Of a stretch of DNA of 64,000 nucleotides, positions 12,486 through 60,969 are shown piece after piece. Source of the DNA: Zygnema circumcarinatum SAG 698-1b (taxonomy: Eukaryota > Plantae > Zygnematophyceae); assembly GCA_037447605.1 (NCBI GenBank), contig CM074823.1:372001-436000 (forward strand), read 5' to 3'. Below the pieces are notes generated by a model. The model was not told the origin of the DNA. It saw only the letters and a program-made list of their open reading frames with translations, and made no database searches. Every line of letters starts with the position of its first letter. Position 1 is the stretch's first letter. Position numbers and translations under genes: made by a program.

Positions 12486-12775
12486 CCCTCCCTCCCTCCC
12501 TCCCTCCCTCCCTCCCTGCCTCCCTCCCTCCCTGCCTCCCTCCCTCCCTCCCTCCCTGCCTCCCTCCCTCCCTGCCTCCATCCCTCCCTCCCTCCCTCCC
12601 TCCCTCCCTCCCTCCCTCCTCCTCCCTCCTCCCTCCCTCCCTCCCTCCCTCCCTCCCTCCCTCCCTCCCTCCCTCCTTCCCTCCCTCCCTCCCTCCCTCC
12701 CTCCCCTCCCTCCCTCCCCCTCTCTCCTCCCTCCCTCCCTCCCATTTCTCAAACCCTCTCTCTCCTCCCTCCCTC
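12486..12775. repeat. (CCCT)n microsatellite, read as (GGGA)n downstream of LysM-like copy 1
   Basis: Direct reading of the sequence. Confidence 0.95.
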
Positions 12776-12922
12776 AATCCTCCACTTCACGCCCCACTCT
12801 ACCTCCTCCCTCCCCTCCCCCCTCCAGCCCACTCTCTGCCAACCCTTCCCCTCTTCTCCACACATCTCTCTCTCTACTCCCACCATCCCACTCCCTCGCG
12901 CTTCCTCCTTCCTCCTCTTCCC

Positions 12923-13675
12923 TCACTGTGAGGCCGTGCCTTTATCCTCCTCCATTACTATAGATCCGGTGCAGCCCGCCACCTTCACGCCGTTGCAATA
13001 ACACGTTCTCACGCATATCACTGTGCCCGTAGCCCATCCGGCGGAGGGGCACGGGGAAGGGATGGTGGTGCCCATACCTGCATGAGATAACACAATCGAA
13101 ATGCAAAGATCAATGCATAAGTTTAGCTGAAAACACGTCCAGCTCTTATTCGGACATATAACGGCGTTAACAGCGTTGAAAGTAAAATCACCAAAAATGA
13201 TCCCTATCTATCTCCTCCCTCCCTCCCTCCCCTCCTCCCCTCCCTCCCTCNNNNNNNNNNCCCTCCCCTCCCTCCCCTCTCCCCTTTTCTGCCTTTCTCC
13301 CCAGATTTCAGCTGAGTCCTTTCAGGCAGATAGATAGCGAGGAGAGGAGTGTGCCCACATTGCGTCCACGTCTTCGTCGTCGTCGCGCCGCAGAACTTGC
13401 GAACCACGGACAGACACGTGTCGCTACTCTGCCACGTGTAGTACGGTGTTAAACAGGCGTTGACGTACGGGTTGACGTTATCACCTGAACAAGAGCGATG
13501 GGGGGAGGGGGGGTAAGGAGCTGCGGAAGGAGAGGTCAACGCTGCAATTATTTGGGTGGCAAGAGTCAACGGGGAATTCACCGCGGAGGGGCTCAGCGGC
13601 TGTGGATGCGGAGAAGACGAGGGCAGCCATGGCCATGGCGAGGAGAAGGTGAGCGAGCATTGCCTTAGCAGCCAT
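12923..13675 (-). CDS. Secreted Cys-rich LysM-like small protein, copy 1 (124 aa; exons 13675-13582, 13484-13359, 13077-12923)
   Basis: Two phase-1 GT-AG introns (G|GTGAAT..TTCAG|G and T|GTGGGC..ATGCAG|G) splice to one ORF: MAAKAMLAHLLLAMAMAALVFSASTAAEPLRGDNVNPYVNACLTPYYTWQSSDTCLSVVRKFCGATTTKTWTQCMGTTIPSPCPSAGWATGTVICVRTCYCNGVKVAGCTGSIVMEEDKGTASQ*. It has a hydrophobic signal peptide, and YTWQSxDTC...GTVICV resembles LysM. Intron 2 contains an N gap. Confidence 0.8.
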
Positions 13676-14211
13676 CTCTCTCTCTCTCTCCTCTGTCCGA
13701 CTCTCTCTCTCTGCCACTCACTCCCTCGCCCTAGTTATTGTCGCCGCCTCCCACGAGGGTGGGCGTCGATTTGAGGGGCAGCTTCGATGGAATGGGCCAA
13801 TGGAACTTCGGCACATCACATGTGGACAGCTCTGATTGGCTCTTCGCGCTGCCGTACTGACCACTGGCTCTGGTTGAATGGCCGAGTTCGAAACTGAGGC
13901 CCTGTCTCCAAATCATTCAGCCGTTCAGACGCAACCACGTCAGCAAAGTTGAATGAAGTTGATCCATGACTTCGTTTTTAGCATCATTTATACTAAGTAA
14001 TTCTGCCCGAAAAGAGATATTAGCACTTTCACTTGTTTTTCCACCTGACCGCAGAAACGTTTCTTTCTGCCCGCATCGGAGCGGGTCAAATCTACGAACT
14101 TCCTGCCGTATTGTATCGGCGATATGGACAGCGTATCTCCATATCGTATTGGCAATATGTTTTTTGATTCAAAATATCGTATTGACGATATGCAATGTGA
14201 ATCTATATCGT

Positions 14212-14517
14212 GTACGTATCGGGAAAAAGCTCTGAAAGTTGGGGCCGCCGGCAGGAAAATCATAGTACCGTACAGTCGGATCACTTGCGAATGGTACGAG
14301 GATGGTACGATCGACTGCGACAAGCGTTTACAAATCCGATTCTGGCCATTCGTGTACGTACACGTGTACAACACTGACATTCAAAGGTACGGTTAGCTAG
14401 GGTTTCAGTAAAACGTGGCGAGCCTCTATTCGCCATCCCTGAACACCCGCCCCAGAAGGGCCCGTCATCACTCCACAGGCGTGTCTTTACTTGTACGTTT
14501 TCGTACAATAATAGTAC
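14212..14517. promoter_or_regulatory. Dense GTAC-core cluster (candidate SBP-box/CuRE-type sites) upstream of LysM-like copy 1
   Basis: 12 GTAC in 306 bp, against ~1.2 expected at uniform composition. It includes TTCGTACAA at 14500-14508. Function is inferred. Confidence 0.4.
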
Positions 14518-15014
14518 TGTAGTATTATTTTGTCGTTTCGTGAAGAATACAATGTGAACCGAAATTTTCGACTTCGGGGCACATATTTTTTTTCGAATCG
14601 CGTTTCCAAGAATCTCAAAATCACTAAATCCCTAAACCGACGGTTCTCTGTGCCGGCATGTCGATACGCCAAAACGGATTCCAATATGATCAGTATGCTC
14701 AATATTCGTAATATTGCGATTTGGTGCATATTATCGATACTTCTTTTCTCTCGATATTGTGAATATCCTCTCGTTACAGTGGATATCGCGATGTTACTGA
14801 TATGGTCAGCATTCTCGATATTTTACGCCAAGGCGGAATGGTCGAGGTCCCCGGTTCGAGTCCTGAATTTGGCAGTTCCCTGTGCTCTCACTCAGACACG
14901 CATATATATTCAGGGCCAGTTCAGGGCCGTGGGCGACCGCTTTTCCTTTGTCCTTAGAATTTTTTTGCTGCCATGGAAAACTGTAAAAGCTGAAGACAGG
15001 TCGGAGCATTGGAT

Positions 15015-15270
15015 CGGCAACCATTGGGCAACCATTGGATGGCAATGGTTGGACCGCCAATGGTTCCGACCATTGGCAATGGTTGTTTCAGTCCGGCGCC
15101 AATGGTTTGGAACCATTCGAATGGCTGCCAACCATTGGCATCCAATGGTTCCAACCATTGGCAACGGTTGTTTCGGTCCGGCGCCATTGCTTCGGAGAGT
15201 CGCGAAACAATGGTTAGCAACTATTCAAATGGTTGACAACCATTGCAACCATTCGAATGACCGATCCAAT
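15015..15270. repeat. Array of short CCAATGG/CCATTGG palindromes with an ~85-bp internal duplication
   Basis: CCAATGGTTCCAACCATTGG and CCATTCGAATGG motifs. The block starting at 15057 is repeated at 15142. Confidence 0.85.
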
Positions 15271-15624
15271 GGTCCGACCTGTGAAAGCTTCAGAGAAAGG
15301 ATAAGTTCTTTTTTTTTCGGCATTTTCGCATGTCCGCATCCATTTCCATAAGGGGTGGATCCGAGAATTTAGTTCATGGGGGGGTAACCAATGACCTAGG
15401 AAAACAGAAAAAAAAGAAAATCCGAAAATGGGGGGCAAAGGCCCTCCAAACACAACCAGAGGTCCACCACTGACTTGCATTCCACTCACATTGTTCTTAA
15501 TCCTTTGAGAGGCCCATCACCTACTGCTCTTATTGCTATTACTGCTCCTGAACCCTAAATCCGAACACCCTAAACATTAATTTAGCGTTGAGAAACCACA
15601 CAACTTTCAGAAATTTTTAAGGAA

Positions 15625-15810
15625 CTCTCCTCCCTCCTCCCTCCTCCCTCCCCTCCCTCCTCTCCTCCTCCCTCCTCCCCTCCTCTCCCTCCTCCCTCCT
15701 CCCTCTCCCTCCCTCCCTCTCCTCCCTCCTCCCACCTCCCTCCTCCCTCCTCCCTCCTCCCTCCTCCCTCCTACCTCCTCCCTCCTCCCTCCTCCCTCCC
15801 TCCTCCTTCA
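15625..15810. repeat. (CCTC/CCT)n tract, G-rich on the LysM-like copy 2 sense strand directly after its stop
   Basis: Direct reading of the sequence. Confidence 0.9.
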
Positions 15811-15814
15811 TTCC

Positions 15815-16575
15815 TCACTGCGATGCCAAACCCTCGCTCTCATCCTCCGCGTACGTTCCGGTGCAGCCCGCCACCTTCACTCCGTTGCAATAACACGTGC
15901 TCACGCATATCACTGTGCCCGCAGTCCATCCGCCGGCGGGGCACGCAGGAGGGGTGGTGCCCATACCTGCATCACACGAAAAGTAGGATTTTTTGACGCA
16001 ATTCAAAAAACAGTTTCAACATCTCCCCTTCCCCCTCCCCCTCTCCCCCTCCCGCCCCTTCAGCGCTTCCCCCTACCCCTTCTCCCTCCCTCCCTCCCTC
16101 CCCCCTCCTTCCCCTCCCGCACCTTCCCCCCATCCCCCCTCGCCCCTCGCCCCTTCCCCCTCCCCTCTCCCCTTTTCTGCCTTTCTCCCCAGATTTCAGC
16201 TGAGTCCTTTCAGGCAGATAGATAGCGAGGAGAGGAGTGTGCCCACATTGCGTCCACGTCTTCGTCGTTGTCGCGCCGCAGAACTTGCGAACCACGGACA
16301 GACACGTGTCGCCACTCTGCCACGTGTAGGACGGTGAACAGCCGTTGACGTACGGGCTGACGTCATCACCTGAACAGGAGCGATGGGGGGAGGGAGGGTA
16401 AGCAGATGCGGGAGGAAAGGTCAACGCTGAAGTCAAAGCTAAAATCTTTAGGGGGGGCCGAGAGTCAACAGAAGAACTCACCGTTGAGGGGCTCAGCGAC
16501 GGCGGATGCGGAAAAGAGGAGGGCAGCCATGGCCATGGCGGGGAGAAGGTGGGCGAGCATTGCCTTAGCAGCCAT
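15815..16575 (-). CDS. Secreted Cys-rich LysM-like small protein, copy 2 (122 aa; exons 16575-16482, 16369-16247, 15966-15815)
   Basis: Same intron positions and phases as copy 1 (donors GTGAGT and GTGGGC): MAAKAMLAHLLPAMAMAALLFSASAVAEPLNGDDVSPYVNGCSPSYTWQSGDTCLSVVRKFCGATTTKTWTQCMGTTPPACPAGGWTAGTVICVSTCYCNGVKVAGCTGTYAEDESEGLASQ*. All 9 Cys are conserved with copy 1. Confidence 0.82.
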
Positions 16576-17089
16576 ATCTCTCTCTCGCTCTTCTCGCTCT
16601 CTCCCTCTTTCTCTCTCCCTCTCTCTCTTCTCCCTCGTCTCTCTTTTCTCCCTCTTCTCCCTCGTTCTCTCTCTCTAGCTCTCCCTCACTCTTCTCTCCT
16701 TGAGCCTTTCTCCTCTCACCCCTTTCTCTCTCTCTCTCCCTGTCAGCTCCCTTCCACACTCGTCCTGCCCTGTGCCCTAAGCGGGCAGATTCCTTTGAGG
16801 TGGGCCCCAAGAGCATATCTGCAGCGGAGTGGCTGTGATTGGTCGAATCCCTTACGGACACACTCTTTCCGTATAAAGACGGGCTAGATACGACAGAATA
16901 ATATTGGACTGACATACGGACTTGCCACACGGGACCAGGCATATTTCACCACGTGTCATATACGACAGGACGCACGCCAGCTTGGTGGCCGAGCGGGAAA
17001 CTTTGTCGTATCTCAATTGAGGCAGCTGCCGACGACGGACGCTGACGGCGGTCGACGTTTCGTACAGGTGTCGTGTGTACACCCGTTGG

Positions 17090-18318: not shown

Positions 18319-19455
18319 TCATGGCTCTCGCCTCCTCCTCTGACTGCGGCTCCATCTCCTTCGAAAGGTGAACTCCAGCCTCCATTGGGCTAGAGATGGG
18401 CCGGCAATTGAACATCCCAAACCTGTCCAAAACATCCGTGGCATATTTCCTCTGGGAGAGGAAAAGACTGCCATCTCTCGCCTTCTTGAGCTGAATCCCA
18501 AGAAGGTACTCGGCCTCTNNNNNNNNNNATCTTTCAAGCTCTGAATGCTGTGAGCCGAGGAACTGACTATGATGAGATCATCTACATATATCCCCACATA
18601 GACTAGCTCCTTCCCTTCCCCTTTGCTATAAACTGAATGATCGGTTTCGAACCTTTTGAAGCCATTCGCCCTTAACAAGTCATCGACCTTCTCGTACCAA
18701 ACACGTGGTGCCTGCTTCAGGCCATACAAGCTCTTCACGAGTTTGCAAACGAACTCCTCCTTTCCGGCTTCCACCTTCCCCTCTGGCTGCTCCATGTAGA
18801 TTTCCTCTGCAAGGTCTCCATACAAGAACGCCGTTTTGATGTCCAGCTGATGGACCATCATCTCTTCTGAAGCAGCAATTGATATTAGTGCTCTCAAAGA
18901 ATTAAATTTCACAACAGGGGCGAAAGTTTCAGAGTAGTCAATGCCCTCCTTTTGACTGTAGCCCTTTGCTACCAGCCGTGCTTTGTAACGGTCCACGCTC
19001 CCATCGGACTTCCTCTTGATCTTGAAGATCCACTTACATCCTATCGCCTTCCTCCCCTTGGGCAGCTCCTCCAACCGCCAAGTGCGGTTCTCAAGAAGAC
19101 TATTCCACTCACTATCTATGGCCGCCTTCCAAAGGTCTGAATCCGCCCCTTCCAGCGCTTCTGGATAGGACTGAGGTTCAGACACACGTGCCATGTAGCA
19201 GTAGGCAATGCCGGCAAGGTCCGCAGAGTCCGAGGGTACACGATCCTGGGCATGCTTCCGCTGCGCCAAGCTGCGCGCAGGTCTACCAAAAACTGCATCG
19301 GGCTCATAACGAGTAGGTGCCTTCACCGGACGTCCACTCCTCGTTGTCGGCTGGGGTAGAGGCTTAGGCGAGGTGCGGTACACCCTTGGTCGCCTTGGTG
19401 GAGTCACATCTGCATATGGGTCAAATCCCACAGGCACAGTTGATGCCGACGACAT
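18319..19455 (-). CDS. pol: Copia reverse transcriptase (RVT_2), contains an N gap
   Basis: KAIGCKWIFKIK, HQLDIKTAFLYG, LVKSLYGLKQAPR, YVGIYVDDL. Confidence 0.9.
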   Translation of the reverse strand: MSSASTVPVGFDPYADVTPPRRPRVYRTSPKPLPQPTTRSGRPVKAPTRYEPDAVFGRPARSLAQRKHAQDRVPSDSADLAGIAYCYMARVSEPQSYPEALEGADSDLWKAAIDSEWNSLLENRTWRLEELPKGRKAIGCKWIFKIKRKSDGSVDRYKARLVAKGYSQKEGIDYSETFAPVVKFNSLRALISIAASEEMMVHQLDIKTAFLYGDLAEEIYMEQPEGKVEAGKEEFVCKLVKSLYGLKQAPRVWYEKVDDLLRANGFKRFETDHSVYSKGEGKELVYVGIYVDDLIIVSSSAHSIQSLKDXXXXRPSTFLGFSSRRREMAVFSSPRGNMPRMFWTGLGCSIAGPSLAQWRLEFTFRRRWSRSQRRRREP

Positions 19456-20489
19456 CGGCTGAGGTGACTCGCTGGTCTCGAGCCAATCCTCTGGCTCCTC
19501 CTGCCAGGTCCTCCCCCATTTTGAGTCGAGCCTTCCGACTCCTCGGGCTCACCGGGCGCATCTCCTGCAAAAGGATGACTAGGGGAGCCATCTGCCCCCT
19601 TCGGCTGAGGAATCCCTCCAACACCTGCATCCTCCCAAATGAACTCAACCATGTTCCCATCCAAAGGGAACTCCGGGACGTCGGGAAGCTTGCCGAACTC
19701 CCACCTTGTCAGTTCGTCAACCTCTAGGTCCCGGCTGCTCTGAATCTTCATCATTACAGGGTTCCAAACCCGGTAAGTGTGACTATCAGAGTTGTAGACA
19801 AGCAAGAAGCCATCTTCGGAGCGGGAGTCGAACTTCCCCTTCTGCTTTTGCTTAGGAACAGCCATCCAACACCGTGAGCCAAAAGCTCGCAAGTGCTCCA
19901 CGGTTGGCTTCTTCCCACTCCAAACCTCTTCAGGAACTCTATCCTTCAAGACTCTAGATGGACATCTATTCCTGATGTAAGCGGCTGTGTTCACGGCCTC
20001 TGCCCAAAAGGTGGTAGGAAATGGAGAGTCACTTAGCATGGACCGAGCCATCTCTCCTAACGTCCTATTGACTCTCTCAGCAGCGCCATTGCTCTGAGGA
20101 GAGTACGGAGCAGAGAATTCGTGTTTAACACCAAGAGACTTCAGGTACTCACTGAATTTCGTCGACTTGAACTCACCTCCGTTGTCGGAACGGAGGGCCT
20201 TCAGCTTCTTGCCGGTCTCTCTCTCAACTTGCAGCTGCCATTCTCTGAAGGCTTCGAAAGCCTCTGACTTCTGCTTGAGAAACTTCACCCAGATCTTCCT
20301 TGAGCAATCATCAAGGAAGGTAATGAAGTATTGTCCCCCACCTATGCTGGTCGGAGTCACAGGGCCACACAAGTCGGTGTGCACCAAGGCCAGCAGCTCC
20401 TTGGCGTGCTCCACGACAGCTCCACTCCTCACGAATGGCTGCCTATGAATCTTCCCTGCCATGCACGCATCACACATGCTGTGATTCAC
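19404..20489 (-). CDS. pol: Copia integrase (rve core)
   Basis: CDACMAGK zinc half-site, HTDLCGP, DNGGEF, ERVNRTL (DDE). Confidence 0.9.
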   Translation of the reverse strand: MNHSMCDACMAGKIHRQPFVRSGAVVEHAKELLALVHTDLCGPVTPTSIGGGQYFITFLDDCSRKIWVKFLKQKSEAFEAFREWQLQVERETGKKLKALRSDNGGEFKSTKFSEYLKSLGVKHEFSAPYSPQSNGAAERVNRTLGEMARSMLSDSPFPTTFWAEAVNTAAYIRNRCPSRVLKDRVPEEVWSGKKPTVEHLRAFGSRCWMAVPKQKQKGKFDSRSEDGFLLVYNSDSHTYRVWNPVMMKIQSSRDLEVDELTRWEFGKLPDVPEFPLDGNMVEFIWEDAGVGGIPQPKGADGSPSHPFAGDAPGEPEESEGSTQNGGGPGRRSQRIGSRPASHLSRCRRHQLCLWDLTHMQM

Positions 20490-40082: not shown

Positions 40083-41810
40083 TTGACCCGCAGTCCCCAT
40101 TCGAGAAAGTGTTACTTTAGAGGATGGGCCGCAAGAGCCAGATCTCACAGTAGCGTCACACTCAAAGATGGCTCAATCCCTACCGAGAGCGTCAAGTGTC
40201 TTCTAACACAACTGGCCCCTGGTACTGATGTTATTTTGGGGAGTGCTTGGTTAACCATGGTCAAAGCACAAATGGACTTTTCCGTCCCACATTGCATTCT
40301 GCACAGTGGTGACAGGCGGATTACCCTGCACCCTGGCAGAGCCACATCCTCTGCTATCAAGCAGCCTGATACTCCTTATCTGTGCTCCGCTATGCAATTG
40401 GCCAAAGCAGTTAAGGAGGGTTGCACCTTGTTCATGGTGCATGTCATGACAGCCACTGAGGATGTTCATGACGAAGATCAGGAGTGGCAGATCACATCTA
40501 CTGACGTGCTCTCCACTGTTCCCTCCCAGTTCCAACCTCTGTTGGATGAATTCAGGGATGTCTTCCCTGATGACCTTCCAAGAGGGTTGCCCCCATCGAG
40601 AGGGGTGGGGCACACAATCCCTCTTGAGCCTGAGCAAAAGCCGCCTTGGCGGCCGATCTATCGGTTAAGTCCGAAAGAAACCGAGGAAATGCGAAAGCAG
40701 TTGGCCACTTTACGTGACAAGGGCTGGATAGAACCCAGTCAGAGCCCCTTTGGGGCGCCCATCTTGTTTGTTGGGAAGAAAGATGGTTCGTTGAGGATGT
40801 GCATTGATTATCGCGCACTCAACAAGATCACTGTAAAGAATCGATTTGCTTTACCACGTATCGATGATCTGTTGGATCGTCTTCACGGCGCCAGAGTGTT
40901 TACTTCACTCGATCTTGCTCAGGGGTACCATCAGATCCGCGTCACGGAAGCTGATGTGCCAAAAACTGCGTTCCGGACGCCGATTGGTCATTTCCAATAT
41001 AAGGTATTGCCCTTTGGATTGACTAATGCTCCGGCGACTTTCCAGGCTGTCATGAACGAGATGTTCATCGGCATGGACGAGTTTGTTTTGGTTTACCTCG
41101 ATGACATCCTTGTCTTCAGTAAGACAGAGGAGGAACATCTTGAACACGTTCGGAAAGTGTTTGAGACCCTGAGGAAGCACCAATTTTATGCCAAGAGGAA
41201 AAAGTGTCACTTCATGCAACGTGAGTTGCTTTATCTTGGGCATATTCTCAATGATCAGGGCCTTCGGCCTGATCTTGCCAAAGTTTCAGCGGTAGAAGCT
41301 TGGGCACCACCAACTGACTTACATCAGTTGAGGTCCTTCTTGGGATTTGCGAATTATTTTCGTAAGTTCATCCAAGGGTTTAGTAAACTGGTTACCCCCT
41401 TGACTAATTTGACACGTTCCGGTGTCCCCTTTACATGGACCCCTGAATGCCAGGATGCATTCGAAGGTGTGCGCCATGCACTTGTTACCGCACCCACTCT
41501 CCGTTTAGCGGACCCGTCCAAGCCTTATGAAGTGGTTTGTGATGCTTCGGGATTCGCCTTGGGTGCCGTCTTGTTTCAAGATGGCCAACCTTTGGCATAT
41601 GAAAGTCGCAAAATGAATCCCGCTGAGCGCAACTATTCTGCAACAGAACAGGAACTGCTTGCAGTAGTCCACGCCCTGAGGACATGGCGGTGCTATTTAG
41701 AGGGGGCGAAAGCGGTCACGCTGGTCGCGACCACCGCCGCTGGCGTTCCTCTCAACCTTGAGACCTTGTCTAGGCGGCGGAACCGCAGTGCGAAGTTCCT
41801 CAAGGTTTGA
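40083..41810 (+). CDS. pol: Gypsy Pol fragment (protease C-terminus, RT, RNase H)
   Basis: PSQSPFGAPILFVGKKDGSLRMCIDYRALN, LDLAQGYHQIR, PFGLTNAPATFQ, YLDD, CDASGFALGAVL, ELLAVVHAL. Confidence 0.95.
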   Translation: MTRSPHSRKCYFRGWAARARSHSSVTLKDGSIPTESVKCLLTQLAPGTDVILGSAWLTMVKAQMDFSVPHCILHSGDRRITLHPGRATSSAIKQPDTPYLCSAMQLAKAVKEGCTLFMVHVMTATEDVHDEDQEWQITSTDVLSTVPSQFQPLLDEFRDVFPDDLPRGLPPSRGVGHTIPLEPEQKPPWRPIYRLSPKETEEMRKQLATLRDKGWIEPSQSPFGAPILFVGKKDGSLRMCIDYRALNKITVKNRFALPRIDDLLDRLHGARVFTSLDLAQGYHQIRVTEADVPKTAFRTPIGHFQYKVLPFGLTNAPATFQAVMNEMFIGMDEFVLVYLDDILVFSKTEEEHLEHVRKVFETLRKHQFYAKRKKCHFMQRELLYLGHILNDQGLRPDLAKVSAVEAWAPPTDLHQLRSFLGFANYFRKFIQGFSKLVTPLTNLTRSGVPFTWTPECQDAFEGVRHALVTAPTLRLADPSKPYEVVCDASGFALGAVLFQDGQPLAYESRKMNPAERNYSATEQELLAVVHALRTWRCYLEGAKAVTLVATTAAGVPLNLETLSRRRNRSAKFLKV

Positions 41811-51000: not shown

Positions 51001-51485
51001 CCCTTTCCGGACGATTTCGGTGCGTAATGGGTTTGCAATGGCCGGACCCAGCGGCGTGACATGTGTGTCGCGTCGCGGACCTCATATTATCTAGTCTTGA
51101 TAGTTTTACTATGGGAAGTAATCACCTACACTACTCTACATCATAGTCTGGTCTTGCACCGGAGGCTTTGCTGTGCTGCTAAGAACGCCTACACTTGTAT
51201 GCGTGAGTAGTGAGTAGAGGGACCTTGAAGTGGTGGGAGAACTTCATTGTGGGAAAAGGCATGATTTTATTATAAGGAGTTTTAGAAGTGAGCTTTCTCC
51301 TAACACTCTCTCATTGTGATTTCCGCTGTGCTTGTCTTTTAGCTTCATTCTGTTGTTATGGGCGATGAGTGAAGTAAGATAGAGCTTTGAGTGTTTGAAT
51401 GTCTTCATCCGTGGGAACTCAAGTTCCAATGGAGGGCGACACCCGAGGTGGCGCCGGAAGTGGGGAGCAGACCCCTGCTTCAACA
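45052..51485 (+). mobile_element. Full-length copia A1 nested in E gag; LTRs 45052-46078 and 50439-51485; TSD CGGAG
   Basis: CGGAG|TGTTAG...TTCAACA|CGGAG. PBS at 46081, PPT ..GAAGGGAT before 50439. Interior riddled with indels. Confidence 0.95.
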
Positions 51486-52897
51486 CGGAGGAGAGCACGA
51501 TCAAAGGGACGAAGAGGTCCACCTCGGAGGACGTGATGGCGATCGACCAGCGGAGGCCTCAGAAGAACAGTGGAGCGCCGGCACGACTTTGCAACTTTTG
51601 CAAACGCAAAGGTCACCTTGAAGCCGAATGTCGAACCAAGAAGGCTGCCCAGGGCAACGCACCGACCCCGAGCGCACCCAAGAAGGACGGCAAAGGCAAA
51701 GGCAAGGAGATCATCTGCTACAAGTGCGAACAGCCGGGACACATGGCGCGGAATTGCACGGCAGATGTAGCCGCCCAGATGAGCGCGAGTCTGTCGACTA
51801 GTGAAGCCAAGCACGCAGCATTTGTAAATCAACTTTCAGTTAATGAAATTGACTATTCTGATTATTTGCCGTGGCTTATAGACTCAGGTGCTTCTAAGCA
51901 CATGTGCAGCGACACGTCTCTATTTTCTCACATGCAGACGCTGGATGAGTCACGAGCGGTGACGTCAGCCACGGGAGACCAGATCGCTGTCACACAAGGA
52001 GGTGTAGTCCAGCTGTCACCACGCGGTGAAGGAACAGCTTCCCAAATCAGGATTGGTAGCGTATTGCACACCCCAACCCTTAGAAATAACTTCTTTTCGG
52101 TTAGTCAGATCTGCGGGAGCGGATATGAGGGGATATTTAGGCAGAATACCTGCAAAATAGTGCATAGAAAAACCAGAAAAATCCTGTGTCGAGGGACCCA
52201 GCGGGGAGGGCTCTACTACCTAGACTGGAAACCGGTAAAACGGGAATTAGTCGCATCCGCGCGAGCTGAAGGCAGCAAGCGCGATGGGGGAGTCTCGGTG
52301 GCCGCTTCCGATAGCACGCCCCGAACTCTCAACTCTGTGAACGGTTCAAAAAACTACGAGCAGGGATTGACCGCAACTGTCCTGGGGAGCGATTGCGACA
52401 ATGGCGAGTCTGAACCGTGCACTCCACGCAGTGCAGCCAGCGACCATGGGCCAGCCCACAAAGACGACGGGAGCGGCCATTTTCGACGAGCGAGGGAAGT
52501 TCCGACGGGAACTTGCGAAATCGAAACCACGAGCGTCACCGACAAAGTGAGTGACGAGAACACCCGCGCTAACTGTACGGACAGTATACGCGCGAAGACG
52601 GCTAAGTCCGGGGGCCCCAATTTTGGTCGGCGCCCCGCACCTTTACGCCGTGACGTGACAAATCGACGAATGTTCGCGGCCCCGGGCGGCGCGCGAAATT
52701 CTACTCAGGCGAGTAAGGAGTCAGCATTCAATGGGGGACTCGAGTCCGTACACGCGGCCTCCGATTCAGCCCGACTGTGGCACCGTCGACTTGGGCACCT
52801 GTCGTACAGTGGTTTGGAGACCCTTATACCTCTCGAGCTCGCCCCAGGTTTTCCCTCACGACTAAAACGGAGAGAAGTCTGCCCGACCGCGCCGTAG
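51486..52897 (+). CDS. pol: Copia E Gag C-terminus (two knuckles), protease, long insert, GAG-pre-integrase
   Basis: CNFCKRKGHLEAEC, CYKCEQPGHMARNC, WLIDSGASKHMC, GGLYYL, ~183-aa insert, LWHRRLGH. Confidence 0.85.
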
Positions 52898-57760: not shown

Positions 57761-59290
57761 ATGCGGCGGCCAAAACAAATGGCGTCACGCCATTCACCTC
57801 CTCCCTCTCCCGATTCGGAGGAGGACGTAGACATGGGCGCGAACCAGGGGCGCGACTTCGGCGACCCCATAGACACGGGTCCCGGGCCCTCGGTCCCACC
57901 TCCGGCTGCCCCTTCGTCTTCACGGGGGCCGGAACTTCGCGACCAGCCGCTGCCGGAGGAGCAGCGCCAGTCGCAGCCGCATGGGGCGGCAGCGCCTCCA
58001 CCAGAGGCGCCCCGACAGAGGTCGGAAGGGGCTGCCCCCCTCGGCGGGCAGAGCACCCGGACACCCCCGGTGAGTATGGGGGTGCCCATCCCCGTGGATG
58101 GGGATGAAGTCCTCCGACGAGCGGAGGCCAGCGCGGATAAACGCTTTTCCGCGCTGGAGGAGGCGCTGGCTCGNNNNNNNNNNGCTCCTAGGGGGGGAAA
58201 TAGAGGAGCTGCAGCGCCCGTAGGGGTACAGGGACCTTCTGCTCGTCCGGCTGCCTCTGGCAGCGGGCGTGGGTCCACGGGGCGCTCCCAGCCCCGAGGG
58301 GCTGGGGCTCCGCCCGGCGCCGCTGCTTCCCCTGCGGCGGGAGCAGCACTGGCCGTTCCTTTTGAAGGAGGGGGCGGACCGCCAGGCAGCAATCCACCTT
58401 CGGCTGGCGCTGCTGGCGGACGGGGCGACCACATTGGTGGATCTACCCCGGCTGTGCGGGATCCTCCCCCGAGAAATCGGGCGAAGGTTCCTCCGATCTC
58501 CTTGTGGGGGGATCGGCCGAATTCCGATTGCCCAATTGATCATTGGATGGGGCAATTGCGTGGGTACCTGTGTGCTACCCAATGCCCTCCCGATCAATGG
58601 GTGAACTTTGCTTCACCTGCTTTGAGGGGCGTGGCATGGAGTGTCTATGCCGGCCGCAAGACACTAATCGGAACAGACTTTGAGAAGTTCGAGTCAGAAC
58701 TTCTCAAACACTTTGGTATCCTGGATCCCAGTGCTGCTGCACGGGACAGGTTCCAGTCGCTCGTGCAGACTGGAAGCGTGGCGGAATTCCTACGGGAGTT
58801 GCGTGCGGCTTGGGCTTCAATCACCAAGTTCCCACCTGGACCTCAAGAATTCTTCTTCAGGTCCAGTCATGGCTTGAAGCCGTACGTTCGGAAGCAGCTT
58901 CGGCTGAATCCTCGTACATTGGAACCTTGGGGGCCTATGGATGATGAGCTGATGTTTGCAGCTGCAGTTCAAACTGACGCTGTGCCTACAAATGGTGCAG
59001 GGCCTTCCCGTCCCCCGCGTGCGGACATTGTGGACCAACCGCGGAAACCTGGTGCGCCAGGCGGTCGTCCAAAGGGGAACGGCAAGAGGAAGGCACCTTC
59101 CTCTAACCATCAGCAATTCCAACGGCCGCCAACGCCGAAACTTGCTCCACTGGAGATGGAGGCTTTGAGGGCGGAAAACAAGTGTTTCCGTTGCAGGAAG
59201 GTGGGGCATAGGTCTTACGACTGCCCATCTTTCAAGAAGGATAGAAAGGGCAAGAGGCCGGCGGAAAACGGCTCCCCACCAGCAGCTTAG
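57761..59290 (+). CDS. gag: Gypsy Gag with Pro/Ala/Gly-rich N-terminus and CCHC knuckle (spans an N gap)
   Basis: LVQTGSVAEFLREL, KCFRCRKVGHRSYDCP. Confidence 0.85.
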   Translation: MRRPKQMASRHSPPPSPDSEEDVDMGANQGRDFGDPIDTGPGPSVPPPAAPSSSRGPELRDQPLPEEQRQSQPHGAAAPPPEAPRQRSEGAAPLGGQSTRTPPVSMGVPIPVDGDEVLRRAEASADKRFSALEEALAXXXXAPRGGNRGAAAPVGVQGPSARPAASGSGRGSTGRSQPRGAGAPPGAAASPAAGAALAVPFEGGGGPPGSNPPSAGAAGGRGDHIGGSTPAVRDPPPRNRAKVPPISLWGDRPNSDCPIDHWMGQLRGYLCATQCPPDQWVNFASPALRGVAWSVYAGRKTLIGTDFEKFESELLKHFGILDPSAAARDRFQSLVQTGSVAEFLRELRAAWASITKFPPGPQEFFFRSSHGLKPYVRKQLRLNPRTLEPWGPMDDELMFAAAVQTDAVPTNGAGPSRPPRADIVDQPRKPGAPGGRPKGNGKRKAPSSNHQQFQRPPTPKLAPLEMEALRAENKCFRCRKVGHRSYDCPSFKKDRKGKRPAENGSPPAA

Positions 59291-59306
59291 GAGTCTCTGC
59301 TGGTGG
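59263..59306 (+). promoter_or_regulatory. Candidate -1 ribosomal frameshift signal of G2
   Basis: G_GAA_AAC, spacer GGCTCC, CCACCAGCAG/CTGCTGGTGG 10-bp stem. The -1 frame reads straight into the pol ORF (..GGSVLANFVS..). Confidence 0.7.
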
Positions 59307-59328
59307 GCTTGACAGTAGAGGGGGCAGC

Positions 59329-60969
59329 GTGTTAGCTAACTTTGTTAGCGCAGCCTTTTTCAGGACTGCAGGGTTTGCAATCCAGCCTCATTCCGATAGT
59401 GTAACTTTTGGGGATGGACGCACCGACCAGATTTCTGGCAGCGTCAGCGTGAAATTGAAGATTCAGTCTTACTCCGAGGTCGTCAATTGCTTGTTGACGA
59501 TGTTGGCCCCAGGAACAGACTTTATCTTGGGGAGCAAATGGCTGACGCATATGGGTGCTCAGTTGGATTTTGTAGTCCCTAATTGCGTCCTCCGCAGTGG
59601 GAGCAGACGCATAACGCTGCAACCAGGCAGTCCTTCCGGACCGCCCTCTTCGCAGCCGTCTTTGTCGTTTTTGTGCTCAGCCATGCAAGTAGGCAAGGCA
59701 CTAAAAACGGATAGCATCTTATTTATGGTGCAAGTCATGACGGCAACTGAAGATGCTCATGACGAGGATCAAGAGTGGCAACCCACTGCGGGTGAGGCAA
59801 TGCCAACTGTTCCCGCTTTGTTTCAACCGTTGTTGAAGGCGTTTGAGGATGTGTTCCCAGACGATCTGCCAAGAGGTCTGCCTCCGACACGCGGGGTGGG
59901 TCATACCATTCCCCTTGAGCCAGAACAGAAACCTCCTTGGAGGCCTATCTATAGGCTTAGCCCAAAGGAGACTAAAGAGATGCGCAAGCAACTCGCTAAT
60001 CTGCGTGATAAGGGCTGGATTGAACCCAGCCAGAGTCCCTTTGGGGCCCCCATCCTCTTCGTTGGCAAGAAGGATGGATCTTTGAGAATGTGCATCGATT
60101 ATCGGGCACTCAATAAGATAACGGTAAAGAACAGGTTTGCTTTACCGCGCATCGACGATCTGCTAGATCGTCTGCAGGGGGCGAAGGTGTTCACATCGCT
60201 CGACCTTGCCCAGGGGTACCATCAGATCCGAGTCACGGATGCTGATGTGCCTAAGACGGCATTTCGGACGCCGATCAGTCACTTCCAATACAAGGTGCTA
60301 CCTTTTGGACTGACCAACGCTCCGGCTACTTTCCAAGCCGTGATGAACGAGATGTTCATCGGCATGGATGAGTTCGTCCTGGTCTACCTGGATGATATCC
60401 TGGTATTCAGCAAGACAAACACAGAGCACCTTGTGCATGTGCGCAAAGTGTTCGAGGTGTTGCGAAAACACACGTTTTATGCCAAGAGAAAGAAGTGTAA
60501 CTTCATGCAACGTGAGCTGTTGTATCTTGGGCATATCTTGAATGATCAGGGATTGAAACCTGATCCAGCCAAGGTGTCTGCTATAAAGACATGGGCTGTA
60601 CCGACTGATCTTCATCAGTTGCGGTCTTTTCTTGGATTTGCAAATTATTTTCGTAAATTTATCCAAGGCTTTAGTAAGTTGGTAACTCCGCTTACCAACT
60701 TGACACGTTCCGGTGTCGCCTATGCATGGACACTAGAGTGCCAGACGGCCTTTGATGGTGTTAGACATGCGCTTGTGACAGCACCTACGTTGAGGTTGGC
60801 TGATCCCACGTTACCATATGAGGTGGTATGTGACGCCTCTGGGTTTGCTTTGGGTGCGGTCTTGTTCCAAGACGACCGACCACTTGCTTACGAAAGTCGC
60901 AAGATGACCTTGCTGAGCGAAACTACTCCGCCACAGAGCAAGAGCTCTTGGCTGTGGTTCACGCCCTGA
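59329..60969 (+). CDS. pol: Gypsy Pol (protease lacking the DSG segment, RT, RNase H start)
   Basis: ANFVS..DFILGSKWL, LRMCIDYRALN, YLDD, CDASG. Confidence 0.9.
   Translation: MLANFVSAAFFRTAGFAIQPHSDSVTFGDGRTDQISGSVSVKLKIQSYSEVVNCLLTMLAPGTDFILGSKWLTHMGAQLDFVVPNCVLRSGSRRITLQPGSPSGPPSSQPSLSFLCSAMQVGKALKTDSILFMVQVMTATEDAHDEDQEWQPTAGEAMPTVPALFQPLLKAFEDVFPDDLPRGLPPTRGVGHTIPLEPEQKPPWRPIYRLSPKETKEMRKQLANLRDKGWIEPSQSPFGAPILFVGKKDGSLRMCIDYRALNKITVKNRFALPRIDDLLDRLQGAKVFTSLDLAQGYHQIRVTDADVPKTAFRTPISHFQYKVLPFGLTNAPATFQAVMNEMFIGMDEFVLVYLDDILVFSKTNTEHLVHVRKVFEVLRKHTFYAKRKKCNFMQRELLYLGHILNDQGLKPDPAKVSAIKTWAVPTDLHQLRSFLGFANYFRKFIQGFSKLVTPLTNLTRSGVAYAWTLECQTAFDGVRHALVTAPTLRLADPTLPYEVVCDASGFALGAVLFQDDRPLAYESRKMTLLSETTPPQSKSSWLWFTP

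Follow-up and report, generated by a model that had tools for sequence, protein, structure and literature searches.

Two small genes lie in tandem on the minus strand of a 64,000-nucleotide stretch of the Zygnema circumcarinatum SAG 698-1b genome (GCA_037447605.1, contig CM074823.1, positions 372,001 to 436,000; this whole stretch is referred to as the window, and all positions are given within it). From sequence comparison, both appear to encode a detached version of the C-terminal tail of a family of algal mosaic proteases, which is the main new point of this analysis. Gene A (16575-15815, minus strand) and gene B (13675-12923, minus strand) each have three exons, encode 122 and 124 amino acids (aa), respectively, with nine Cys apiece, and consist of a signal-peptide-like region and one LysM-type module, and nothing else. 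The module is best read as a free-standing version of the fourth LysM-like repeat of algal papain(C1A)-EGF-LysM proteins, and this structural and homology part of the explanation is held with good confidence. The best explanation as a whole, in which A and B are secreted, stand-alone, divergent, disulfide-rich LysM-type modules binding an extracellular glycan, is favoured with modest confidence, and glycan binding by the module alone is proposed tentatively.

Both gene models were reproduced exactly by reading the minus strand across 12800-16700 and by script translation of the window sequence, confirming that genes A and B are intact, real and correctly described in an earlier note on this DNA, which had proposed three-exon genes with identical intron phases, a signal peptide and an odd Cys count of nine. 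All four introns are of the canonical GT...AG type, in phase 1 and with pyrimidine-rich 3′ ends, and in both genes intron 1 splits a Gly codon (G|GT) and intron 2 splits a Cys codon (T|GT). In gene A, exon 1 (16575-16482, starting with the ATG at 16575-16573) encodes a signal-peptide-like region of 26-27 aa, judged by eye, and is followed by a 112-nucleotide (nt) intron 1 (16481-16370) that shares 79% identity with its counterpart in gene B. Exon 2 (16369-16247) encodes the N-terminal half of the LysM-type module, which runs from β-strand 1 through the GDT loop and helix 1 into the first part of helix 2 and includes Cys 1-3. Intron 2 (16246-15967, 280 nt) has a (GGGGAGG)n array inside it and interrupts the codon for Cys 4. 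The C-terminal half of the module is encoded by exon 3 (15966-15815) and comprises the loop with Cys 5 and a conserved Trp, and β-strand 2 (GTVICV) with Cys 6. Beyond it, the sequence runs through the tail TCYC-x7-C (Cys 7-9) to an acidic C-terminus, and the stop codon is TGA.

Gene B has the same layout, with exon 1 (13675-13582, ATG at 13675-13673) encoding the signal-peptide-like region, exon 2 (13484-13359) the N-terminal half of the module, and exon 3 (13077-12923, TGA stop at 12925-12923) the C-terminal half and the Cys tail. Intron 2 of gene B (13358-13078) holds an assembly gap (13251-13260) that leaves its length uncertain and the coding bases unaffected; the gap falls within a (GGGAGG)n array, 99 nt past exon 2 and 174 nt ahead of exon 3. 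The scaffold join across this gap is credible because the flanking blocks match gene A in order, orientation and spacing (187 vs 186 nt). The motif C-x3-YTWQS(G/S)DTC ... GTVICV is present in both products, with 49 aa from Y to V. In each, exon 1 encodes M-A-A-K followed by a 17-residue hydrophobic core (Kyte-Doolittle 11-residue maximum of 2.24 for gene A and 2.76 for gene B) and by small residues at -3 and -1 (A-V-A, as in gene A, or T-A-A) before a Glu, a textbook layout for a putative signal peptide, again as judged by eye.

The relatives that identify the module are two proteins, P0004 (664 aa) and P0005 (812 aa), which carry Peptidase_C1, EGF and LysM domains according to Pfam and are encoded on Logan contigs of ~3 kb. 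These contigs are presumably transcripts because an uninterrupted open reading frame (ORF) of 2.0-2.4 kb fills most of each. The peptides of exons 2 and 3 are colinear with the last ~70 residues of both proteins, and the exon-2 part is 57-71% identical. BLASTP aligned gene A exon 2 with P0005 residues 739-766 (E 2e-10) and gene A exon 3 with P0005 residues 773-810 (E 6e-5), while gene B exon 2 aligned with P0004 residues 597-624 (71% identity, E 7e-13) and gene B exon 3 with P0004 residues 640-664 (E 4e-4). In a joint alignment of A, B, P0004 and P0005 (alignment A3), eight Cys are in register: four at the eukaryotic-LysM positions, one additional pair close to the ends of the two helices, and one pair in the C-terminal tail. 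Three Trp are likewise conserved: the first stands in β-strand 1 in place of a Val that is usual there, the second in helix 2, and the third in the loop leading to β-strand 2. The peptides of exons 2 and 3 meet at a single column of this alignment, which is a conserved Cys of P0004 and P0005; since the Cys of the split codon (T|GT) thus falls on a conserved Cys of uninterrupted homologues, the predicted splice between exons 2 and 3 is independently supported.

LysM repeats were located in P0005 at residues 564, 623, 683 and 744 using a local LysM hidden Markov model (HMM), so that the tail forms the fourth unit of a regular array. The fourth repeat of P0004 and P0005 is the 8-Cys, Trp-substituted variant, and the best stretches reported by Pfam for these proteins are canonical repeats only, so domain counts may miss the tail. 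Replacement of WNP by CMG, a further Cys pair inside the motif and a tail with Cys, all listed in the earlier note, are indeed present in A and B. The module is not an orphan, however, and the features singled out as unusual are not its own: P0004 and P0005 already carry eight of the nine Cys, the Trp substitutions and the tail, and these features are therefore an inheritance from an older module type. The only peculiarities of A and B are then the ninth Cys (the second C of C-Y-C), which is found in A and B only and has no counterpart in P0004 or P0005, and the stand-alone architecture with nothing beyond a signal peptide.

A search of the 64-kb window with P0004 and P0005 (tblastn) recovered only the tail module, at A, B and a third copy (copy C), and no coding sequence for the protease, EGF or LysM1-3 parts. 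A and B are accordingly regarded as stand-alone because papain, EGF and LysM1-3 coding sequence is missing from the window, and both carry their own ATG and signal-peptide-like exon 1. That A and B might be the last exons of a mosaic gene was considered and ruled out, as no other mosaic-protein domains occur in the window. The combination of a C1A peptidase with LysM in non-vascular green plants has been noted in a domain survey only (PMC6362431), and no account of the tail module, or of copies standing alone, turned up in a literature search.

The LysM nature of the module was examined by several profile methods. A HMMER profile of the three exon-2 peptides of the family, run against 1.84 billion representative proteins, gave 11 matches at E<=1e-3 (best 3.2e-7), none of them close; the Pfam LysM domain (PF01476, clan CL0187) was present in nine of the ten matches scanned, and the matched stretches were LysM repeats. 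The only PDB sequence matched by this profile was 5bum_A, the LysM of a plant chitinase A, at a non-significant E of 0.11, and the corresponding PDB profile search with exon 3 returned chance matches only (nitric oxide synthase, E at least 0.25). Against the local LysM HMM, which was built from 36 Pfam-validated repeats, the exon-2 peptides scored 17.0 (gene A), 14.0 (gene B) and 9.7 bits over HMM positions 1-17, scores that were reached by none of 2000 shuffles. A tail profile consisting of the A3 columns from P0004 residue 590 onwards, with the exon pieces entered as separate rows, was then compared with the 36-repeat LysM profile using hhalign and matched LysM positions 1-46 with a probability of 89.3% (E 2.1e-6). 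In the same comparison LysM repeats 1-3 gave 97-98.5%, and the control domains EGF and papain gave 0.6% and 0.3%, respectively. The alignment places four Cys at the positions of eukaryotic Cys-LysM domains (before β-strand 1, in G-D-T-C, in the loop and in C-V) and inserts ~7 extra residues in the loop between helix 2 and β-strand 2. In a protein-language-model Atlas, the P0005 tail lay nearest to LysM clusters (0.90), the top cluster being basidiomycete LysM, and exon 2 alone gave 0.80-0.85. The first element of the sugar groove is kept, as S-G-D-T-C in gene A and S-S-D-T-C in gene B. That the Cys-rich stretch is a divergent LysM-type module, as the earlier note had suggested, is thus supported by these sequence profiles, and in particular by the library-wide matches of exon 2, the hhalign comparison and the shuffle test.

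Structure prediction with AlphaFold2 (AF2) was run on full-length P0004 and P0005 with a very shallow alignment. The P0004 tail was modelled with strands at residues 597-599 and 645-647 enclosing helices at 606-614 and 622-626, with a predicted local distance difference test (pLDDT) score of 53-75, and the P0005 tail with strands at 743-745 and 792-794 enclosing helices at 752-760 and 766-773 (pLDDT 47-63). The same strand-helix-helix-strand order was predicted for the canonical LysM1 and LysM2 in the P0004 and P0005 models. The modelled tail fold of the mosaic relatives is therefore consistent with the LysM β-α-α-β arrangement. A fold search with the P0004 model matched LysM structures on repeat 1 only, the best being 5k2l_A.

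A and B are young tandem duplicates. Sequence identity between the two is 88% over a stretch that starts 50 nt before the ATG and reaches into intron 2, and 76% over exon 3 plus the 3′ microsatellite; the flanking sequences are unrelated. An origin by DNA-level duplication is the most economical reading of these sequences because the introns have been retained. The exons diverge by ~12.5% (pS 0.155, pN 0.115) and introns 1 and 2 by 21% and 32%, respectively, and exon 2 differs at only ~6% of sites. The Cys residues and the core LysM signature are untouched by the substitutions between the two genes, and the splice sites are kept in both copies. Judged from the two copies, this pattern would fit a secreted family that is young, evolves fast and is under a degree of constraint, and it would also fit early decay.

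The description of a tandem family in the earlier note was right and, if anything, understated, as a tblastn search within the window revealed copy C (37368-36880, minus strand, E 4e-10), with exon 2 at 37256-37146 and exon 3 at 37022-36880 separated by a 123-nt intron, and with a homologue of the A/B intron 1. The stretch ahead of the exon-1-like donor (37368) contains an in-frame TGA (37383-37381) and neither an ATG nor a signal peptide; seven Cys are left, and the ICV motif of β-strand 2 has been lost. Copy C is, on these features, probably a pseudogene.

Several observations weigh against the explanation of A and B as functional, secreted, glycan-binding LysM-type proteins. Per-exon Pfam scans reached no curated cut-off, the best score being that of PF23462 (LysM3_NFP) for gene A exon 2 (12.7 vs 28.1 bits, E 0.19); PF01476 gave no match in these scans, a weak negative given that the domain is split by intron 2. 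The exon-3 peptides alone matched the LysM HMM only weakly (0.5-0.9 bits, positions 38-46), in the correct order. The AF2 models are poor overall, with mean pLDDT values of 44.8 and 38.4 and tail values of 47-75. In the sugar groove, C-M-G stands in place of the Asn-containing WNP element, and the loop after it has ~7 additional residues, so that ligand binding may be altered or lost. Between A and B, dN/dS is 0.72, which is not significantly below 1 (Fisher p = 0.28). Finally, no transcript-derived or annotated A/B-like protein was found among the 1.84e9 representatives or in the word index of proteins that was also searched, which is mild evidence against abundant expression in the sampled conditions.

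In the word index, neither the exon-2 part nor the exon-3 part (which lies inside an 89-aa stop-free stretch) gave a match, and the P0004 tail retrieved P0004 itself only, with no stand-alone relatives or further mosaic members, so that the alignments are shallow. Two metagenome scans with the exon-2 and exon-3 alignments returned pattern matches, none of which was confirmed by tblastn. Among the profile matches, P0007 (an 88-aa ORF on a 576-nt ENA metagenome contig, E 3.3e-4, with no Pfam family) contains two ~29-residue segments resembling the helix-1/helix-2 part, and may derive from a related gene as a fragment or through an artefact of the reading frame.

The last two of the observations above, the dN/dS ratio and the lack of a matching transcript-assembly or annotated protein in the large libraries searched, are also what would be expected if A and B were non-functional relics, that is, DNA pieces copied from the 3′ end of a mosaic protease gene into a transposon-rich region, which have an upstream ATG exon by chance and have begun to decay in the direction of copy C. 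The clear degeneration of copy C, a duplicated unit that barely exceeds the gene body and has unrelated flanks, and the density of retroelements in the surrounding region can be read in the same way. Two copies nevertheless retain their three-exon frames, four splice sites, nine Cys and an exon 1 that reads as a well-formed signal peptide; exon 2 is far less divergent than the introns (~6% vs 21-32%), and the substitutions between A and B spare the Cys and the LysM signature. We therefore consider decay of both genes unlikely, and the explanation of A and B as functional secreted LysM-type proteins is preferred.

Copia- and gypsy-type reverse transcriptase, integrase and gag ORFs occur at four sites in the window (18319-20489, minus strand; 40083-41810, 51395-52897 and 57761-60969, plus strand), with RVT_2, rve and gag-pre-integrase domains in the copia-type and RVT_1, RNase H and gag domains in the gypsy-type elements, bearing out the retrotransposon-dense block described earlier. 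Purine-rich microsatellites, as read on the coding strand, hug both genes (16577-16698, 15627-15816 and 16025-16172; 12500-12775 and 13214-13290): (GA)n lies directly 5′ of each ATG, (GGAGGGA)n directly 3′ of each stop, and (GGGGAGG)n within intron 2. These arrays essentially delimit the duplicated unit of A and B. A tandem array of 42-nt period (15020-15260; Tandem Repeats Finder array 15055-15193), with palindromic CCATTGG/CCAATGG cores, lies between the two genes and occurs once in the window. The window also holds 13 gaps of 10 N.

The secretion, fold, ligand, dimerisation and expression of A and B are what we infer in the preferred explanation, which would run as follows. The source of A and B would be a gene for a signal peptide and an 8-Cys terminal LysM-type repeat, and the product would be a secreted, disulfide-rich protein of ~96-98 residues in the algal wall or mucilage. 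The bound ligand would be a glycan, most probably a polymer containing N-acetylglucosamine (GlcNAc), such as chitin fragments or peptidoglycan, and would be bound at the side of the LysM groove that carries the conserved GDT loop, in the manner of plant LysMe and fungal LysM effectors. A targeting module common to A/B and the mosaic proteases could allow the small proteins to occupy or mark the same ligand, and the ninth Cys, if unpaired, may permit a covalent dimer or the attachment of a partner. With W-N-P lost, the loop longer, extra disulfides present and Trp residues conserved, the ligand could be something other than classical chitin or peptidoglycan.

These same features bear on a further explanation, in which the protein is secreted and functional and the LysM scaffold now serves a purpose different from the binding of GlcNAc glycans, either as a disulfide-knotted signalling or recognition peptide or as a competitor or regulator that mimics the mosaic tail and binds its protein partner or another wall polymer. 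The loss of the second sugar-groove element with enlargement of the loop, two extra disulfide pairs together with a free Cys, and three conserved Trp that are atypical of LysM would all fit such a change, as would the position of the module at the end of large multi-domain proteases, where it could have a docking or capping role. LysM specificity is not itself fixed either, as Medicago LysMe also bind cellulose (PMC10318984). Against such a re-use, the GDT loop provides main-chain contacts to GlcNAc in known LysM complexes, and it is kept in gene A and P0005 (with Gly replaced by Ser in gene B and P0004). In the mosaic proteins, moreover, the module keeps the register of the three ordinary LysM repeats, and conserved surface Trp are equally typical of sugar-binding sites and protein interfaces. 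Re-use of the scaffold is, on balance, judged improbable, and binding of an extracellular glycan is retained as the working explanation.

A more far-reaching proposal is that the small proteins form an undescribed class of algal extracellular regulators: detached copies of the protease tail acting as decoys or antagonists that compete for, or mark, the ligand of the proteases on microbial or algal walls, with the free Cys used for dimerisation or partner capture, and evolved independently and from a protease tail, not from a receptor. This proposal is speculative and has a low probability. If true, it would describe an early streptophyte analogue of the tuning of LysM-receptor signalling by LysMe in land plants.

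The earlier note had further characterised the motif as fungal-effector-style, and whereas its LysM reading stands, this affinity does not: the nearest relatives are the C-terminal modules of the algal papain-EGF-LysM proteins. An origin as a fungal-type LysM effector, through horizontal transfer or a contaminating fungal contig, could be argued from the presence of the fungal multi-LysM proteins P0003 and P0011 among the profile matches, with Cys at the same four positions, and from the basidiomycete LysM cluster at the top of the Atlas comparison. However, these fungal matches cover the generic N-terminal LysM signature only, the best and only relatives over the full-length module are of the algal papain-EGF-LysM type, and the introns, microsatellites and flanking plant-type copia/gypsy elements are continuous with the rest of the window. 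Horizontal transfer from fungi was rejected, as the closest kin are algal-type mosaic tails and the element context is of plant type, and a fungal source of either kind is considered very remote.

Streptophyte algae are the reference for the gain, in land plants, of LysM-based perception of chitin, peptidoglycan and symbiotic signals. If the preferred explanation is correct, an alga close to land plants reached the arrangement of a signal peptide and one LysM by another route, namely by freeing the 8-Cys terminal repeat of a large LysM-tailed protease family, and A and B would offer a tractable handle of ~100 residues on the ligand of the tail and hence on the target of the mosaic proteases. 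If A and B are unexpressed, the locus is a mere record of a partial gene duplication in a transposon-rich region. The locus also shows that gene finders and Pfam can overlook short, intron-split, divergent domains.

Among known systems, the plant LysMe proteins (type IV; MtLysMe1-3 and OsEMSA1) have a signal peptide and one LysM with four Cys, occur in tandem arrays and bind chitin weakly; binding to chitin, chitosan and cellulose has been shown, and a role in mycorrhiza was described recently (PMC10318984). A and B resemble LysMe in combining a signal peptide with a single Cys-containing LysM-type domain in ~100-125 aa, in their tandem arrangement and in the expected binding of extracellular glycan. 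They differ in having nine Cys in place of four, Trp for Val in β-strand 1 and no WNP, whereas the LysM of LysMe is canonical and recognised by Pfam. Orthology is not indicated, as none of the 11 exon-2 profile matches is a LysMe, a separation that was made without direct sequence comparison. The fungal LysM effectors (Ecp6, Slp1, Mg1LysM/Zt 6q40 and RiSLM) are, like A and B, secreted and LysM-only, with Cys at the four eukaryotic-type positions, and some of them act in part through dimerisation (PMC7337405, PMC3700227). In contrast to A and B, which are algal genes with algal protease tails as their closest kin, these effectors are fungal, delivered to a host and recognised by Pfam, and their dimers form through chitin or non-covalent contacts and not through a free Cys. 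In the Equisetum chitinase A structure (5bum_A), A-C-x-x-Y-Y-T-V-K-S-G-D-x-C aligns with A-C-L-T-P-Y-Y-T-W-Q-S-S-D-T-C over β-strand 1 and the loop only (E 0.11), and this chitinase and that of Volvox (5k2l) differ from A and B in having a canonical LysM joined to a glycoside hydrolase. The closest resemblance is to the tails of the algal papain(C1A)-EGF-LysM proteins, with which A and B share eight Cys, three Trp, the T-C ... C tail and the change of WNP to C-M/L-G, and from which they differ in standing alone behind a signal peptide and in carrying the extra Cys (C-Y-C) and an acidic C-terminal extension of ~12 residues.

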